A stretch of DNA of 56,315 nt from Octopus bimaculoides (Eukaryota), in NCBI RefSeq assembly GCF_001194135.2, contig NC_068994.1, positions 29,985,807 through 30,042,121 on the forward strand, written 5' to 3'. The notes beneath the pieces are model-generated. The model was not told the origin of the DNA. It saw nothing but the letters and a program-made list of their open reading frames with translations, and searched no databases. The first letter of the stretch is position 1. The number at the start of each line of letters is the position of its first letter. Positions 11,222 through 52,550 of the stretch are shown here, piece by piece. Position numbers and translations under genes: made by a program.

Positions 11222-13213
11222 CTAAGAACTGCTGTTTTGCCGAAGTTTCGAAGAAATGCTTTTCGAAGCAGCTTTTTGGCAACATTTAGGTTCCTTCTGC
11301 TTATTCTGTTTCAATTCTTGAGATGCAGATGTTGAACAGTTTTTAGAAAGTGGACCCCATCTAGGTGATGCCATGGGAAAGCCTCTTGACCAACCATAGT
11401 GACTACCCCAGCCTGGAGACATTGGCGGCAAATAGGTGGAACCCATCAGAGAAGGAATGGCTGCTGGCTGAAACTTCATAGCTGATGAAGACATCTGCAT
11501 CTGTCGATGTAGATCACTCGCAGCGCCAACATTGCTAGCATCCGGTCCATGCAGGAGCCATAAGCTGTCAAGCCCTGAATCAAGATGTGAACTTGGTGAT
11601 GTGATACTATTCTCATTGCAAGAAGATGTTGGCAAAGAACTTGTACCAGAAGATGCCTCTTTCTGAAGTTGTTGCTGTTGTTGTAGGCATGCATTCATCC
11701 ATTTTGAAAACATGCTTGTATTCTGCTGTTTGCTTGCCATAGACCGTGGGTCTTGCTGAAAAAATATTTCCTCATCCATTGAGCCCTGAACACACACATG
11801 GTTATTGAACTGTGACTTCTGTGAAAATTGTTTTTTGCAAATGCAGCAGAGCAACGGATTTTTATCAGAACTGTTTGATGGTACTGTAGGCATCTCCACA
11901 GCAACACTGTTATTGTTGTTGTTGTTGTTAGTGTTGTTGTTATTGTTGTTGGTGGTGGTAGTACTAGTTTTATCATGATGTTGAGAGCTTGCTTTTGAAG
12001 AACAGTAACCATTTTGGTTGTTTGTGGGAGATTGTTCACTTCTCGTGACTTCCTGAAGAGAATCTATATTTGATTTTTTATCCTCATTCTGACATTGCTG
12101 TTCTTTCAACAATTTCAAACCATGGGTTCGCTCATGATTCTTTAAAGTGCTTCTCTGTGAGAAAGCTTTCCCGCAAGTTAAACATACAAATGGTTTTTCG
12201 CCAGAGTGAATCCGTTCATGATTTCGTAAATTTGTCACTTGACTAAATGCTTTCCCACAGACCAAGCACACATAAGGCTTCTCCCCCGAATGTGTTCGTA
12301 AATGGTTTTTCAAATCTGTTCGCTGGGCAAATGCTTTAGGGCAAACTGTACATGCAAATGGTTTTTCTCTTGTGTGGACGCGTAAATGGTTTCTTAGATC
12401 TGTTCGTTGGCTAAATGCTTTTGGGCACATCATACAGTGAAAAGGCTTCTCTTTGGTGTGAACCCGCTCATGATTGCGTAAATTTGTCAACTGGCTAAAT
12501 GCCTTAAGGCAGTAGGAACATGTATATGGCTTGATGCCTGTGTGTACCCTTTCGTGACAAGTGAGTTCTGCCTGCTGGGCAAAGGACTTCAGACATACAG
12601 AGCAAGTATAAGGTTTTATTCCTGTGTGAATTCTCTCATGATTTCGAAGATTGGTCAGCTGGCTGAACGCTTTTGAACACGTTAAGCATTTGTAAGGCCT
12701 CTCACCAGAGTGTATCCGCTCATGATTACGTAAGTTCGTGCGCTGGCTGAAGGATTTGGAACACACCAAGCAAATGTATGGCCTTTCCCCACTGTGTATA
12801 CGTTCATGATTGCGCAGGTTTGTACGTTGACTAAATGCTTTTAAGCACACAAGACACACATAGGGTTTCTGACCAGTGTGAGTTCTTTCATGATTTTGGA
12901 GGTTCACTTTCTGTGCAAATACTTTTTCACACGTATTACATTTAAATAATTTAGGTGGAGTGTAAGGCATATTACTGCTTTGTCCACCCACAATCTGATT
13001 TGGTGCTTGGCTGGAATTTAGCTTGGTATTCATTTTCATAGCTGATGTTTTACAGTTTTGAGAAGTTGACAGGACTGATTCTGAGGAAACCATAGTTGGA
13101 CTTGAATGAATCAGTTTTGAAGTATCCTGTTTTAAGTTGGCTGGGGACAATGCAAATGTTCGATTGCAGAAATTTCTTTGGGTAGGCACCCCATATATCG
13201 GGAAAGGATACAT
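11222..13213 (-). CDS. C2H2 zinc-finger protein ZNF-A, 663 aa: 10 tandem fingers, one degenerate finger, poly-N and poly-Q tracts, conserved C-terminal Trp-rich motif
   Basis: Uninterrupted 2-kb ORF with CxxC-x12-HxxxH repeats and TGEKP-type linkers. Polypyrimidine tract plus AG acceptor (13224-13223) ends 9 nt before the ATG. Fingers differ mostly by synonymous changes. Confidence 0.96.
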   Translation of the reverse strand: MYPFPIYGVPTQRNFCNRTFALSPANLKQDTSKLIHSSPTMVSSESVLSTSQNCKTSAMKMNTKLNSSQAPNQIVGGQSSNMPYTPPKLFKCNTCEKVFAQKVNLQNHERTHTGQKPYVCLVCLKAFSQRTNLRNHERIHSGERPYICLVCSKSFSQRTNLRNHERIHSGERPYKCLTCSKAFSQLTNLRNHERIHTGIKPYTCSVCLKSFAQQAELTCHERVHTGIKPYTCSYCLKAFSQLTNLRNHERVHTKEKPFHCMMCPKAFSQRTDLRNHLRVHTREKPFACTVCPKAFAQRTDLKNHLRTHSGEKPYVCLVCGKAFSQVTNLRNHERIHSGEKPFVCLTCGKAFSQRSTLKNHERTHGLKLLKEQQCQNEDKKSNIDSLQEVTRSEQSPTNNQNGYCSSKASSQHHDKTSTTTTNNNNNNTNNNNNNNSVAVEMPTVPSNSSDKNPLLCCICKKQFSQKSQFNNHVCVQGSMDEEIFFQQDPRSMASKQQNTSMFSKWMNACLQQQQQLQKEASSGTSSLPTSSCNENSITSPSSHLDSGLDSLWLLHGPDASNVGAASDLHRQMQMSSSAMKFQPAAIPSLMGSTYLPPMSPGWGSHYGWSRGFPMASPRWGPLSKNCSTSASQELKQNKQKEPKCCQKAASKSISSKLRQNSSS

Positions 13214-25838: not shown

Positions 25839-26336
25839 CTCTTTTTACTTTTTTACTTGTTTCAGTCATTTGACTGTGGCCATGCTGGAGCACCGGNNNN
25901 NNNNNNNNNNNNNNNNNNNNNNNNNNNNNNNNNNNNNNNNNNNNNNNNNNNNNNNNNNNNNNNNNNNNNNNNNNNNNNNNNNNNNNNNNNNNNNNNNNNN
26001 NNNNNNNNNNNNNNNNNNNNNNNNNNNNNNNNNNNNNNNNNNNNNNNNNNNNNNNNNNNNNNNNNNNNNNNNNNNNNNNNNNNNNNNNNNNNNNNNNNNN
26101 NNNNNNNNNNNNNNNNNNNNNNNNNNNNNNNNNNNNNNNNNNNNNNNNNNNNNNNNNNNNNNNNNNNNNNNNNNNNNNGTGTCTACATATATACGACGGG
26201 CTTCTTTCAGTTTTCGTCTACCAAATCCACTCACAAGGCTTTGGTCGACTCGAGGCTAAAGTAGAAAACACTTGCCCAAGATGTCACGCAGTGGGACTGA
26301 ACCCAGAACTATGTGGTTCGTAAGCAAGCTACTTTA
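25839..26336 (-). mobile_element. SINE family A, young, middle lost in N-gap 25897-26178
   Basis: 3' tail lies left of the gap and the head right of it; CpGs retained. Confidence 0.85.
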
Positions 26337-27799: not shown

Positions 27800-28187
27800 N
27801 NNNNNNNNNNNNNNNNNNNNNNNNNNNNNNNNNNNNNNNNNNNNNNNNNNNNNNNNNNNNNNNNNNNNNNNNNNNNNNNNNNNNNNNNNNNNNNNNNNNN
27901 NNNNNNNNNNNNNNNNNNNNNNNNNNNNNNNNNNNNNNNNNNNNNNNNNNNNNNNNNNNNNNNNNNNNNNNNNNNNNNNNNNNNNNNNNNNNNNNNNNNN
28001 NNNNNNNNNNNNNNNNNNNNNNNNNNNNNNNNNNNNNNNNNNNNNNNNNNNNNNNNNNNNNNNNNNNNNNNNNNNNNNNNNNNNNNNNNNNNNNNNNNNN
28101 NNNNNNNNNNNNNNATAATAATAATAATAATACAAATGATATGTGAGCATATGCATATATACATACATATATGTACATACCTACATC

Positions 28188-30088: not shown

Positions 30089-30306
30089 NNNNNNNNNNNN
30101 NNNNNNNNNNNNNNNNNNNNNNNNNNNNNNNNNNNNNNNNNNNNNNNNNNNNNNNNNNNNNNNNNNNNNNNNNNNNNNNNNNNNNNNNNNNNNNNNNNNN
30201 NNNNNNNNNNNNNNNNNNNNNNNNNNNNNNNNNNNNNNNNNNNNNNNNNNNNNNNNNNNNNNNNNNNNNNNNNNNNNNNNNNNNNNNAGAGTATATATGT
30301 GTAGAG

Positions 30307-33229: not shown

Positions 33230-34815
33230 ACTGGGACCAAAATACTGACTCATAACTTGAAATTAGAAAACAACAAATCCTACCAAATCAGTGCCAAGGG
33301 AACCTACGTTATTCTTGTATTTTGGACCCAAATACTGAAGCATGCACTGGATATCATCATCATATAGTAAACTATAAAACCCTCATTGTACCAATGAATC
33401 TTAAAACACCCACATAGACAACAAACTTTGCCAACTTTGTACTAATGAATCCTAACAAAATCTCTTAGCTAATACTCAAAAAGATAAACCATAACTCAAA
33501 AGTAGTAGAAAACAATTCCTGTGAAATCTGTAGCAATGAATCTTGCTATATTTTCTAAAGTATTAACTTGGAATTAGTAAACAAAAATACTGTAAACACT
33601 TTACTAAGCAACCCCCAATATTCTCTTATTTAATATCCAAATAACAAATTGTAACTTAGAATTTGCAAACAACACTGCTAGCTCTCTTCTTTAGATCCAA
33701 AATACTTGACTGTAATGCAGAATTAATAAACAACACACCCCACAAATACTGTACAAATGAATCTGGTTATATTCTTTCCTTTATGAATTGTAACTTAGAA
33801 TTACAACAAAAGGAACTCTGCTAATTTTGTCACAATGAAGCTTACCATATTCTCATATTTATGACTCAAATACTGAACCGTAACCAGGAATCAGTAAAGA
33901 ACTAAATCTGAAAACAGAAGAACCCTACCATATTCTCTACTTTTGGATTCAATTACTAAAACATGGAAATAGTAAATAAAAGCCCTGTCAAACCTTTGCC
34001 AATGAATCCTACCATATTCTTTTCTTTAACATCCAACTTGTAACTCAGAATTAGTAAACAAAAAACTTAGCTAACTCTGTCTCAATGAATCCTACCTTAC
34101 ACGTGAATTTAAGAGCCAAAAATTTAAACATAACTTGGTATTAGTAAACAATAAACACTGCCAAGTCTATACCAAAGAATTCTACTTTATTCTCTTATTT
34201 GCAACACAAATACTGAACTGTAACTTAGAATTAGTAAATAACAAACACAGAACTGGAACTCAGTTATAGTAGACAACAAACCCTGCCAAATCTATACCAT
34301 TGAGGCTTACCATATTCTCTTATTTAGAACTCAAATGCTCAACCATAACTTAAATTATAAAACAAGAAAACATGCCAACACTGTGCCAAGGAATCCCATC
34401 ATACACTTAAATTTCAGAGCCGAATAGCAAACCATGAACTGAAATTAGTAGAAAATATACCATCCAACTCTGTGCCCATGAATTGTAGCATATTCTCATA
34501 TTTAGGACTCTCTTACTTAGGATCCAAATACTGAACCAGGACTTGGAATGAGTAAACAAGCCCTGCCAAATCTGTGCCATTCTATATTCTCTTATTTAGC
34601 ATCCAAAGACTGATCTGTAACTTGCAATTAGTAAAGAAAACCTGTAAATACTGTACCAAATTCTCTTAACAACGACTTAAATACAGAACTGTAAATCAAA
34701 ATTAGAAGAAAAACAACCCAACAACTCCGAACCCTTGACTCTTATTATAGTCTGTTATTTCAGAACCAAATACCGATATTAAAAAATTATGATTGCCAAC
34801 TCTGTACAAATTCTT
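33230..34815. repeat. Old, diverged tandem array with a ~80-90 bp unit, roughly 18 units
   Basis: Recurrent aatgaatcctaccatattctcttattt / ccaaatactgaactgtaacttagaattagtaaac / ccctgccaaatctgtacc; measured unit starts 34001, 34084, 34174. Confidence 0.85.
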
Positions 34816-43412: not shown

Positions 43413-43423
43413 NNNNNNNNNNA

Positions 43424-44507: not shown

Positions 44508-45773
44508 TCAGGTTGAGTAAAAAGTAAGCAACATTTTGAACCATGATGAATTTGTACCAGATTTTTTCAGAGTTTTGAAATTTTGTTAAACATTTTTTTT
44601 GCAGTTGTCTGATAATAGATATAGACTTGCCCAAATGCATCAATAAATTAACATTTATATTTTTTTTCACCATTGTTACAATCATCTGAAATGGAACTGT
44701 GAAAGTGCGATATTTGAGCAATTTTGCTATTCAGCTCCAAAAAAAAGATGTAAAGCAGCTGAAACTGTTCGTGATATCAATGAAACATTTGGTGACCAGT
44801 GAGAGGTCAGCTCCAAAACGGTTTAAACGATTTTGTAGATTGTGAGCAAAGTGGACGACCATCTGTCATTGATGACAGTCAATTAAAGACTGTCACTGAG
44901 AAAAATCCATATAAAACCACTTGAGAACTGGCAAAAGAACTTCAAGTTAACCAGAAAACTGCTTGCAACCATTTGCATGCAATTGGAAAATCAAAAAAGC
45001 TCGACAAATGGGTACCACACGGTTTGAATGAAAATCAGAAAATGCTCATTGCTTCTTCTCCGTAACCAGACCAATCCATTTCTTGACCATATTGTAATTT
45101 GCGACTAAAAATGGATTCTGTACAATATAAAATGTTCTTCACAGTGGTTGGACCAAAATGAAGTACCGAAAACCTTCCCTAAACCCAAGCTCTTCAAAAA
45201 GAAGATTATGGTGACTGTTTGGTGGTGTACTTTTGGAATCATCCATTATAACTTTTTAAAATCTGGAAAAAACATTACTGCAGAAACATATTGCCATGAA
45301 ATTGCCAAAATGAACGAAAATCTGCTACTCCTCCATCTCAGACTGGTCAACAGAAGAGGGCGAATCATTCTTCATAACANNNNNNNNNNNNNNNNNNNNN
45401 NNNNNNNNNNNNNNNNNNNNNNNNNNNNNNNNNNNNNNNNNNNNNGCTCGACCACACATTTCACTAATGATGCTCCAGATGTTGAAGGAACTTGACTATG
45501 AAGTTCTTCTCCACCCAGCTTATTCCCCAGACCTTTTCTCCTACCGACTTCCACCTGAGAGAGAAGAGCTCAAAAATCAAACCGATGCTGTAAGTGTGTT
45601 CAAAGAGTTCATCCAGATTTTTATGTTGCCAGAGTAAACAAACTTGTAACTCATTAGCAAAAATGTGTTGATTGTAATGGTACTTACTTTGATGAATAAA
45701 ATTTCTGCATTGTTGAAATATATTGTGATGAATTTCATGTTTCAAAACGTTGCTTACTTTTTACTCAGCATGA
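44508..45773 (+). mobile_element. Near full-length decayed mariner (Hsmar1/Mos1-like, DD34D type)
   Basis: TA-flanked TIRs tcaggttgagtaaaaagtaagcaac / gttgcttactttttactcagcatga; KLDKWVPH, FLDHIVICD*KW, KIMVTVWW, ILHN..ARPH, HPAYSPD. Confidence 0.93.
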
Positions 45774-49075: not shown

Positions 49076-49412
49076 CACAATAAATAATAAGAGCTTAGTT
49101 AACACAAGATTCTTAAATTTCAGAGATCATAAGATAGAGAGCAAGAAGTTAAAAGTTCCAATACTGGCCCAATTCCTACACCCCAGATTCTTCAACTATT
49201 TTAGAAGAAAGGTGTTAATGACAGGATAGGGATTCAACTTAAAAATAAGTTGTATAACAAAACATACATAAATAAATTACTGCTCCAATGATGTAATTTT
49301 AGTATGTGTGTATATGTTTGCATGTGCAATTATATAAATATATATANNNNNNNNNNNNNNNNNNNNNNNNNNNNNNNNNNNNNNNNNNNNNNNNNNNNNN
49401 NNNNNNNNNNNN

Positions 49413-50049: not shown

Positions 50050-50205
50050 ACTACATTATAATAAATTAGAATTATGGGAGGCGTTTCAATTTGAGTTTTT
50101 CCTTGCAAAAGATGAATGGTGCTGCTGCTGCTGTTGGTGGTGGTAGTGTTGGTTGTGGTGATGAGCAAGATTAGGTGATGATGATGATGAGATTGTTGCC
50201 ATGAC
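50050..50205 (-). pseudogene. Degenerate duplicate of the ZNF-B His/Gln-rich coding segment
   Basis: Aligns to 51000-51230; one frameshift and a TCA>TGA stop relative to ZNF-B. Confidence 0.85.
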
Positions 50206-50555: not shown

Positions 50556-52550
50556 TTAGATGACACCAGCTTGCTGGCTGTTTTGTGACCGATTGTTTTG
50601 CTGTTTGCTCTGCCTCACCCCGCATGACAGATTTGACGAGGAGTTTGCCCAGCTCGAGCTCCACCTTGGCGGGACTTGGAAGCCGCGAGACCAACCATAA
50701 TTGGATTCCCACGATTCCCAGGTCGAAGACATCCAGGACGAAGACAATGCAAGGGGCTGCAAACGAAGTGCAGCTGAGCGGGAGTGAGCATGAGATGATG
50801 GGCTTGGTGCTGGTGGCGGCGGTGTGGCTGGAACGGATGACATAGAGTTGTGTGAAGTTAATGATGCATTCATAGTTGGTGTGGAGGAGATGCTTGAGGA
50901 GAAAACTGGTACAGTTACTGTAGCAGCCCCAGCAGCAGCAGTGGCAACAGAAGAAGTAGAACTGGACACTACATTAGCTGCAGTTGACAATGTTGTACTT
51001 ACACTTGTTGAGGAATTAGAATTATGAGAGGTGTTTGAATTCGGGTTTTCCCTAGCGGAAGATGAATGGTGCTGCTGCTGCTGTTGTGGTTGCTGCTGCT
51101 GCTGCTGCTGTTGCTGCTGTTGTTGATGCTGTTGGTGATGGTGGTGGTGTTGGTTGTGGTGATGACCATGATTACGGTGATGGTGGTGGTGGTGGTGATG
51201 GTGATGCGACTGTTGCCGTGACATGCTTGTTGTAGATGTGTCCTTTGACAGCTGCTCAGGTGGCATTGCTCGACTGACTTCTTCACGAGTGTGAGAGCGC
51301 ATGTGTTTTTGCATGTTTACCCGTTGAGTAAACCCTTTACTGCACACAGCACAGCTGAATGGTTTGTCAGCTGTGTGTGTATACTCATGCTTTTTCAGGT
51401 TTGCTCTCTGGCTGAATCCACGCTGACATGTGCCACATTTGAATGGTTTCTCTCCAGAATGAACGAGAAGGTGAATGGTTAAGTTGGCTCGCTGAGTGAA
51501 ACCCTTTTTGCACACCTCACAGTAAAACAATTTACATTTTGTGTGTGTGCATGCATGATTGATTAAATGCACTCTCTGCGTGAATTCTTTACTACAGATA
51601 TCACATTGGAATCTTTTCAAACCCATGTGCATACATTCATGCTTTTTCAAGTTTGCACTCTGTGCAAAAGCTTTGTCACATATGGAACACTTGAATGGTT
51701 TTTCTCCACAGTGAATTCTTTCATGGTTCTGGAGATGAATCTTTTGACTAAACGTTTTGGAGCACACAAAGCAAGAATATGGCTTCTGACCACTATGGAC
51801 ACACTCATGATTAGTTAAATGCACACGCTGGCTGAATGCTTTCGAACAAATGCTGCACTGGTAAGGTTTCACTCCACTGTGAATGCGTTCATGGATGATA
51901 AGATGGGCTTGCTGGCTGAATGCTTTGCAACAAACAACACAGACATATGGTTTTATTCCACTGTGAATCCGTTCATGACAGATGAGGTGTGCCCTCTGGC
52001 TGAATGCCTTTCGACAAACGTAACAAGCATAAGGTTTTATGCCTGTATGAATACGTTCATGGTTTTGCAAATGTGCTCTTTGATTAAATGACTTTGAACA
52101 TATTGCACAAGAGAATGGACGTTCACCAGTGTGAACACGTTCATGGCTCAGCAGGTGAGCTCGTTGGCTGAATACTTTGCCACAGAAACCACAAGCCAAG
52201 TTTTTGAAACTCTCTGTGGCATGGTCCCGTTCATGGTTTCTTAAGTTTGCTCGTCGTGAGAAAGCTTTACGACAGATTTCACACTTAAAGGCTTTGGTAC
52301 TTTCTCCAAATCGATGCAGAAATGATTTTCGGTGGTGCGATATCCCATAATATGAACTCGAGGTACCAGATGTACTAGCTGTACCAGATGTACTAGGTGT
52401 GTCAGAAGTACTAACTGTGCCAGAAGTACTAGAGGTTGTGCCAGATGATGTAGTTTTCCAGTTGTCTTCCGGTAAAATTGTCCGACTATAATTGTCAGTT
52501 GAGGACATTTGTTTACCAACAGAATATGAAGATGTTGGTTCCTGGTACAT
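50556..52550 (-). CDS. C2H2 zinc-finger protein ZNF-B, 664 aa: N-terminal STSGT repeats, 12 fingers, poly-H/poly-Q, conserved C-terminal Trp-rich motif
   Basis: Uninterrupted ORF with 12 CxxC-x12-HxxxH units; paralogous C-terminus with ZNF-A; candidate acceptor at 52675-52674. Confidence 0.96.
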   Translation of the reverse strand: MYQEPTSSYSVGKQMSSTDNYSRTILPEDNWKTTSSGTTSSTSGTVSTSDTPSTSGTASTSGTSSSYYGISHHRKSFLHRFGESTKAFKCEICRKAFSRRANLRNHERDHATESFKNLACGFCGKVFSQRAHLLSHERVHTGERPFSCAICSKSFNQRAHLQNHERIHTGIKPYACYVCRKAFSQRAHLICHERIHSGIKPYVCVVCCKAFSQQAHLIIHERIHSGVKPYQCSICSKAFSQRVHLTNHECVHSGQKPYSCFVCSKTFSQKIHLQNHERIHCGEKPFKCSICDKAFAQSANLKKHECMHMGLKRFQCDICSKEFTQRVHLINHACTHTKCKLFYCEVCKKGFTQRANLTIHLLVHSGEKPFKCGTCQRGFSQRANLKKHEYTHTADKPFSCAVCSKGFTQRVNMQKHMRSHTREEVSRAMPPEQLSKDTSTTSMSRQQSHHHHHHHHHHRNHGHHHNQHHHHHQQHQQQQQQQQQQQQPQQQQQHHSSSARENPNSNTSHNSNSSTSVSTTLSTAANVVSSSTSSVATAAAGAATVTVPVFSSSISSTPTMNASLTSHNSMSSVPATPPPPAPSPSSHAHSRSAALRLQPLALSSSWMSSTWESWESNYGWSRGFQVPPRWSSSWANSSSNLSCGVRQSKQQNNRSQNSQQAGVI

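Follow-up and report, generated by a model that had tools for sequence, protein, structure and literature searches.

A ten-finger C2H2 protein of Octopus bimaculoides with conserved, near-uniform recognition helices and a predicted A-rich DNA target

The stretch of the Octopus bimaculoides genome analysed here, 56,315 nucleotides long and hereafter called the window (assembly GCF_001194135.2, contig NC_068994.1, positions 29,985,807 to 30,042,121 of the forward strand), carries two zinc finger genes in the same orientation, ZNF-A and, 37 kb from it, its tandem paralog ZNF-B (Table 1). In the following, we will focus mainly on ZNF-A, a gene which is annotated in Octopus and uncharacterised. Its counterpart P0001 (662 amino acids) from Octopus vulgaris and O. 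sinensis is 99% identical to it and is annotated as 'zinc finger protein 2 homolog'.

The open reading frame (ORF) of ZNF-A encodes ten tandem fingers, all of which (10/10) harbour zinc ligands of the C-x2-C-x12-H-x3-H type and the conserved F/Y...F...L core. The linkers that join them count seven residues without exception (TGQKPYV, SGERPYI, SGERPYK, TGIKPYT twice, TKEKPFH, TREKPFA, SGEKPYV and SGEKPFV). Pfam matched zf-C2H2 (PF00096, E=1.1e-53) and zf-H2C2_2 (PF13465, E=1.5e-79), and in the AlphaFold model the array is predicted to fold into ten beta-beta-alpha units (EE-EE-helix), with a predicted local distance difference test (pLDDT) score of 80-89. The same model suggests disorder at residues 1-85 and 515-663, the region of the C-terminal motif scoring below 50. 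Zinc-finger models alone matched ZNF-A and ZNF-B, and neither protein gave a Pfam match to the KRAB, SCAN or BTB effector domains. Taken as a whole, the explanation that we regard as reasonably probable is that ZNF-A, a single-exon gene, codes for a poly-zinc-finger protein of the canonical Krueppel type, that it belongs to a family recognisable by its terminal motifs, and that it binds DNA at an A-rich target.

Table 1. Position of the features of ZNF-A and ZNF-B in the window (TRF, Tandem Repeats Finder)
Feature	Positions	Strand	Residues	Description and basis
ZNF-A coding sequence	11222..13213	minus		uninterrupted 663-residue ORF, stop codon included; ORF list
ZNF-A array, ten tandem canonical C2H2 fingers	12122..12946	minus	90-364	regular expression and coordinates, Pfam, AlphaFold
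Finger 2 copy of SQRTNLRNHERIHSGERPY	12776..12832	minus	128-146	
Finger 3 copy of SQRTNLRNHERIHSGERPY	12692..12748	minus	156-174	
Isolated eleventh finger-like unit LLCCICKKQFSQKSQFNNHVCVQ	11786..11854	minus	454-476	paralog alignment; pLDDT 78-88
Thr/Asn-rich low-complexity tract TTTTNNNNNNTNNNNNNN	11903..11962	minus		(TGT)n on the plus strand; TRF 11908..11951
Family-signature C-terminal motif PPMSPGWGSHYGWSRGFPMASPRWG	11354..11428	minus	596-620	invariant residues in 5 members
Conserved N-terminal MYPFPIYG	13190..13213	minus		start shared by family members
ZNF-B, tandem paralog	50556..52550	minus		664 residues, 12 fingers, C-terminal NYGWSRGF

The recognition helices (positions -1 to 6) of fingers 1-5 read QKVNLQN, QRTNLRN, QRTNLRN, QLTNLRN and QQAELTC, and those of fingers 6-10 QLTNLRN, QRTDLRN, QRTDLKN, QVTNLRN and QRSTLKN. 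Fingers 2 and 3 share the 19-residue stretch SQRTNLRNHERIHSGERPY, for which 12 of the 19 codons differ, all of them synonymously, against the 12.1 that independent sampling from the codon usage of ZNF-A itself would give. When the full 28-residue units of these two fingers are compared, 25 residues are identical and 17 of their codons differ, with a nucleotide identity of 0.69. Extended to all 45 finger pairs, the same comparison yields 433 differing codons out of 759 identical-residue positions versus 429.9 expected. Nucleotide identity among the fingers ranges from 0.35 to 0.74, the longest in-register identical run between any two of them is 15 nt, and TRF reports a period of 84 nt with a 77% match. 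The nucleotide likeness among the fingers is no greater than what the protein sequence imposes. That fingers are identical as proteins and unrelated in their codons is explained by purifying selection, which kept each finger almost unchanged while synonymous sites became fully randomised.

Between the fingers of ZNF-A, the ratio of non-synonymous to synonymous substitution rates (dN/dS) is not computable, dS being saturated, and orthologous coding DNA was therefore compared instead by Nei-Gojobori counts, with sequences from O. sinensis and O. vulgaris (L002, L003) and a distant one, L001, coding for P0007. The latter protein, which originates from the Logan assembly of SRR29271461, has 671 residues and is 54% identical to ZNF-A over its full length. 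Over the 275 codons of the array, O. sinensis and O. vulgaris show 18 and 17 synonymous changes, respectively, and no non-synonymous one, corresponding to a dN/dS near 0; under neutrality, zero non-synonymous among 18 changes has a probability of about 7e-13. The dS values of 0.10-0.11 in the array versus about 0.055 in the C-terminal part reflect few changes (17-18 versus 13-16), and nothing is drawn from them. With regard to L001, the proportion of synonymous differences (pS) from ZNF-A in the array is saturated at 0.95 and that of non-synonymous differences (pN) amounts to 0.072, while pN is 0.49 in the N-terminal region and 0.43 in the C-terminal region.

The 27 amino-acid differences between the arrays of ZNF-A and P0007 are distributed very unevenly. 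None affects the base-contact positions -1, 2, 3 and 6 (0/40) or the zinc ligands (0/40), one lies at another helix position (1/40), two are in linkers (2/45), five between the histidines (5/30), and 19 in the beta-hairpin (19/80). The helices of P0007 correspond finger by finger to those of ZNF-A, the sole change being R5K in finger 2. Since fingers 2 and 3 of P0007 differ from each other by two residues (R5K and an I/V exchange), the fingers evolve independently, without homogenisation, and the identity of fingers 2 and 3 in Octopus is ancestry retained under constraint. An old duplication followed by purifying selection is thus a well-supported reading of these alignments. The comparison shows that the internal duplications behind the ten fingers predate the separation from a cephalopod lineage which is very distant, a separation which we infer to be that between octopods and decapods. 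P0007 is most likely a decapodiform ortholog of ZNF-A, because the pattern seen for ZNF-A and P0007 is the same as that of another pair, P0123 from Octopus and P0125, which falls in a cluster with a protein of the cuttlefish Acanthosepion; these two share 51% identity, their fingers being conserved while their tails have diverged.

An initial annotation of this DNA had listed the ten helices exactly as given above (ten of ten), had reported 19 residues shared by fingers 2 and 3 with 12 of 19 codons synonymously different, a count that we repeated with the same outcome, and had described the fingers as 'synonymously saturated', which the 433 observed versus 429.9 expected differences over the 45 pairs bear out. 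It had further attributed the identity of the fingers to purifying selection instead of recent duplication, in agreement with the saturation, with the 0 versus 17-18 non-synonymous and synonymous changes, and with the absence of contact changes (0/40). Its position for the feature, 12115-12945, needs a slight adjustment, the ten-finger array being found at 12122..12946 on the minus strand.

How unusual these helices are was estimated against a background of 1766 fingers from 116 unrelated poly-zinc-finger proteins, the best-scoring matches to ZNF-A, whose fingers are not mutually independent. The triple Q-1/N3/N6 is present in 6 of the 10 fingers of ZNF-A versus 1 of 1766 in the background, and N6 in 9 of 10 versus 4%; background fingers carry Q-1 in 35% and N3 in 16% of cases. 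In every one of the 116 unrelated proteins, one shared triple covers at most 44% of the fingers. The uniformity of the helices is real, and characterises ZNF-A and, less strongly, its family.

With regard to the bases that such helices may read, Asn and Gln recognise adenine, Asp recognises cytosine in its unmodified form, and Glu recognises either thymine or 5-methylcytosine (5mC, mC) (PMC12264921), the contact positions 6, 3 and -1 used here being -1, -4 and -7 from the first His in that work. Engineered modules include QRANLRA for AAA, RKDNLKN, where N6 goes with a 5' A, for AAG, and SPADLTR for ACA (PMC7317221). Among solved structures, fingers 2-3 are matched most closely by Aart (PDB 2i13), an engineered protein of six fingers in which QRANLRA is aligned with QRTNLRN, and by analogy with these modules an A-rich target of ZNF-A is consistent. 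Read with the code, fingers 1 to 10 give AAA four times, N[T/mC]A, AAA, ACA, ACA, AAA and ANA. The predicted site, of about 30 bp and written from finger 10 to finger 1, would be 5'-ANA AAA ACA ACA AAA N(T/mC)A AAA AAA AAA AAA-3', and the predicted duplex ANAAAAACAACAAAAN(T/C)AAAAAAAAAAAAA. It would form an aperiodic composite, made of a 12-bp A-run and three conserved interruptions; because the order of finger types is aperiodic, one long A-rich site is predicted, and no tandem repeat. The initial annotation had proposed an (NAA)n target such as (TAA)n or (CAA)n, from which we depart, since N6 in 9 of 10 fingers specifies A at the 5' base too. Nothing in this analysis connects ZNF-A with repetitive DNA, SINE (short interspersed nuclear element) tails or RNA either, and the predicted site is without a good match in the window.

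We propose that the ZNF-A array would bind double-stranded DNA, its fingers, with their TGEKP-type linkers, wrapping the major groove, and that each finger would read three bases via helix positions -1, 3 and 6. Q-1, N3 and N6 would each form a hydrogen bond with adenine, D3 would read C, and E3 would read T or 5mC; shorter A-runs could be bound if fewer than ten fingers engage. The motifs MYPxPxY and SWxNYGWSRGFP..PRW, located in the disordered ends, would most likely recruit partner proteins. ZNF-A would then act in transcription or on chromatin as a factor specific for a DNA sequence, and its class of targets would be conserved among coleoids.

Several points weigh against this proposal. 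Code-based predictions are often wrong for long natural arrays, in which commonly a subset of the fingers contacts bases. The predicted 30-mer gave 0 matches at up to 3 mismatches in the 56-kb window, which is too small to test a genome-wide target; the best match to the predicted site there reaches 23/28, and the second, at 22/28, lies in the poly-Asn codons of ZNF-A itself. A literature search for the helix strings of ZNF-A returned nothing on natural QxxNxxN fingers. The role assigned to the terminal motifs is pure inference, and the decapodiform placement of P0007 is deduced from the pattern of divergence. As for the core of fingers 6-9, AAAACAACAAAA, it has 6 matches in these 56 kb, again too small a sample to be informative, versus 2.0 expected, a number equalled or exceeded in 3 of 100 shuffles.

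Among other explanations of the uniform helices, one holds that they were selected to track a tandem microsatellite, (TAA)n, (CAA)n or poly(dA:dT), as found for instance in satellites or in the tails of SINEs and of long interspersed nuclear elements (LINEs). Six fingers with the same contact triple speak for it, as do fingers 1-4, whose AAA predictions fit a homopolymer of at least 12 bp, the richness of the window in simple repeats and the precedent of ZNF384 for dA.dT binding (PMC8589989). However, N6 calls for A at the 5' base, where (TAA)n and (CAA)n would need T or C; A-runs are not among the abundant repeats of the window, which are of the (TA)n and (TG)n types, and no A/T run there exceeds 15; and fingers 5, 7, 8 and 10 break the periodicity while their E3/C6, D3 and T3 residues are equally strictly conserved. 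We consider a microsatellite reader rather unlikely, and favour a defined composite site because the non-AAA fingers 5, 7, 8 and 10 are as strictly conserved as the others.

A second explanation, improbable in our view, is that the Q/N-rich helices read either single-stranded DNA (ssDNA) or RNA rich in A, poly(A) for example. RNA or ssDNA is bound by some C2H2 proteins, ZNF384 is reported to favour T-rich ssDNA in vitro (PMC8589989), and the summed score of the Pfam model zf-C2H2_jaz on ZNF-A amounts to 52.6 bits. This score, however, is not accompanied by any individual stretch above threshold and is overlapped by stronger generic C2H2 models, and the closest solved structures are all complexes with double-stranded DNA. 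H-x3-H spacing and 7-residue TGEKP-type linkers, which ZNF-A displays throughout, are the hallmark of arrays wrapping duplex DNA, whereas dsRNA-binding fingers of the JAZ/ZFa type have long linkers and extended His spacing. An assignment of ZNF-A to the JAZ/ZFa type was rejected on its 7-residue linkers, its H-x3-H spacing and a PF12171 match that ranks below stronger C2H2 models.

Still less probable is that the helices owe their conservation to a protein-protein or structural role, the Q/N residues then having no sequence-specific nucleic-acid target. PMC12774644 describes C2H2 fingers as able to mediate protein contacts, and ten fingers exceed what most factors use on DNA, but conservation peaks precisely at the four canonical base-contact positions (0/40, versus 19/80 in the beta-hairpin) and the linkers are of the DNA-binding type. 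Finally, recent tandem duplication or ongoing gene conversion in the manner of a PRDM9-type minisatellite, which the 84-nt TRF period and the PRDM9-like proteins among the best-scoring matches might have suggested, is refuted: synonymous differences between the fingers match the saturation expectation and thereby exclude it, shared runs stop at 15 nt with identities of 0.35-0.74, and orthology is preserved finger by finger across a deep split.

Beyond the array, ZNF-A possesses an eleventh finger-like unit, about 90 residues past finger 10, whose ligand spacing is unusual, C-x2-C-x12-H-x-C ('NHVC'). This 'NHVC' is kept in the ortholog P0007, and the paralog P0099 has a similar 'NHKC'. In alignments with the paralogs the unit falls on their last finger, and ZNF-B and P0010 carry a normal H-x3-H where ZNF-A has 'NHVC'. 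Given its H-x-C spacing, the eleventh unit may differ from ordinary fingers in whether or how it binds zinc. The Thr/Asn tract, coded by AAC and AAT, contains two more Asn than in P0001 of O. vulgaris and O. sinensis, and a one-residue indel (SNIDSL/SNMIDSL) also distinguishes Octopus ZNF-A proteins; the differences in tract length are ordinary coding variation of the microsatellite type.

ZNF-A, ZNF-B, P0010, P0099 and P0123 share a start of the MYPxPxY type and a C-terminal motif that reads RLQ...SWENNYGWSRGFP..PRW...C..KQ.KQ, in which W602, Y606, W608, R610, F612 and P617 are invariant across the five members. The form that defines membership, RLQ..(x)..SW(E)N(N)Y.W.RGFP..P following a C2H2 array, is found in ZNF-A, and its start MYPFPIYGVPTQ fits M-Y-(P/S/Q)..P.Y..Q, as can be compared in P0007, P0010, P0099, P0122 and P0123. 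An exhaustive search of 1.84 billion representatives with a profile of the tail retrieved 13 proteins, namely P0001 (E=1.2e-27) and 12 others, and the named matches all come from Octopus, Argonauta hians or Acanthosepion pharaonis. No Pfam family matched the terminal motifs SWxNYGWSRGFP..PRW and MYPxPxY, which are probably linear motifs that bind partners. At least three family members have an ortholog on either side of the deep split, and P0099 and P0145, orthologous versions of one paralog in Octopus and Argonauta, fall in one cluster at 90% identity. Argonauta P0128 (526 amino acids, 7 fingers) was considered as an ortholog of ZNF-A and rejected, being far more divergent than Octopus-Argonauta orthologs (at least 90%); it is another member of the family. 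As far as the named members indicate, this NYxWSRGF family is small and restricted to coleoid cephalopods.

In ZNF-B, the helices are mostly QRAHLxx or QRVHLxN (Q-1, H3), with QRANLxx (Q-1/N3) interspersed, and by the same code its predicted target would consist of purine-rich triplets of the AGA/GAA type. The protein also contains long His/Gln and Ser/Thr low-complexity tracts. A segment of 100 nt at 50064..50163, lying about 0.4-0.5 kb past the stop codon of ZNF-B, shares 79% identity with 51014..51113 in the His/Gln-rich coding stretch of the gene; it may have arisen by duplication of a part of the gene, or be a 3' exon, either alternative or relic. In P0123/P0143 and P0099/P0145, paralogs from Octopus and Argonauta that are encoded outside the window, super-repeats of 3-4 fingers were observed (e.g., NQFFLKx - QKINLKN - QRGNLKL - QKINLND three times); some of their helices have Phe-Phe at positions 2-3, and some linkers lack one residue (TGELY/TGDLF). 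These super-repeats would fit a target with a period of about 12 bp, or else spacer fingers. A broader and doubtful view, tentatively mentioned here, is that of a coleoid-specific family, hundreds of millions of years old, of dedicated homopurine/A-tract readers acting via a previously undescribed, tryptophan-rich C-terminal motif (SWENNYGWSRGFP). It would comprise ZNF-A for A-runs with CA interruptions, ZNF-B for AGA/GAA-rich sequences and the super-repeat paralogs, as factors for simple-sequence or A-tract chromatin.

The window as a whole has a G+C content of about 35% and many (TA)n and (TG)n microsatellites. Six assembly gaps (N runs) are present at 25897..26178, 27800..28114, 30089..30287, 43413..43422, 45380..45445 and 49347..49412, most of which adjoin such microsatellites and dispersed SINE-like repeats, the latter occurring in direct and inverted orientation at about 730, 7040, 18620, 26200, 27650, 28400, 37530, 43000 and 54230. 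Between ZNF-A and ZNF-B, a degenerate tandem array extends over about 33240..34440 on the plus strand, with A/C-rich units of some 90-125 bp (e.g., TAACTTAGAATTAGTAAACAACAAACACTGCCAAATC), and 2 of the 6 near-matches to the core of fingers 6-9 lie inside it. For octopus C2H2 genes, flanking tandem repeats of 70-90 bp have been reported.

The biological significance of ZNF-A is modest at present, its target being predicted. Its near-uniform Q/N/N helices nevertheless predict a long A-rich site with unusual clarity, and in a form that can be tested at low cost. If true, ZNF-A would allow the recognition code for N at position 6 to be examined in a natural protein and would be a natural ten-finger A-tract reader, as well as an entry to a conserved class of regulatory elements in coleoids; if the prediction fails, it would give a clean counter-example to code-based motif prediction.

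The best solved relatives of ZNF-A are all DNA-bound arrays, namely, ZNF568, Aart, PRDM9 and CTCF. ZNF568/Zfp568, CTCF and Aart agree with ZNF-A in the spacing of the fingers, in their hydrophobic core and in having linkers of the TGEKP type. Aart comes close in its helices as well, QRANLRA and QRTNLRN differing at helix positions 2 and 6 alone, but ZNF-A is a natural protein which uses this finger type six times, and where N6 instead of A would add a third predicted adenine contact. The vertebrate multi-finger C2H2 protein ZNF384 (CIZ/NMP4) is reported to prefer sites made of A/T homopolymer runs (homopolymeric dA.dT) and, in vitro, T-rich ssDNA (PMC8589989); the analogy with ZNF-A is one of function only. 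ZNF384 is absent among the 120 matches to ZNF-A listed, no direct comparison having been made, and, unlike this vertebrate protein, the family of ZNF-A carries an NYxWSRGF C-terminal signature found only in cephalopods. With PRDM9-type arrays, ZNF-A has in common several fingers that are near-identical in protein; its contacts, in contrast, are frozen and not hypervariable, and its DNA displays no homogenisation.

In cephalopods, C2H2 genes have expanded to hundreds to thousands, largely independently in octopods and decapods (PMC13218726, PMC10547256). ZNF-A resembles the genes of these expansions in its domain class, its tandem paralog 37 kb away and its single-exon array, whereas its family counts only about a dozen representatives at 50% identity. 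Membership of ZNF-A in the young octopus expansion was considered and rejected, in view of its full-length ortholog P0007 and of the 0/40 contact changes despite a saturated dS. Unlike young and fast-evolving genes that track transposons, ZNF-A is matched one to one by an ortholog beyond a deep cephalopod split and has invariant contacts, and it represents the opposite of such expansions, being old, slowly evolving and frozen in its putative DNA contacts.

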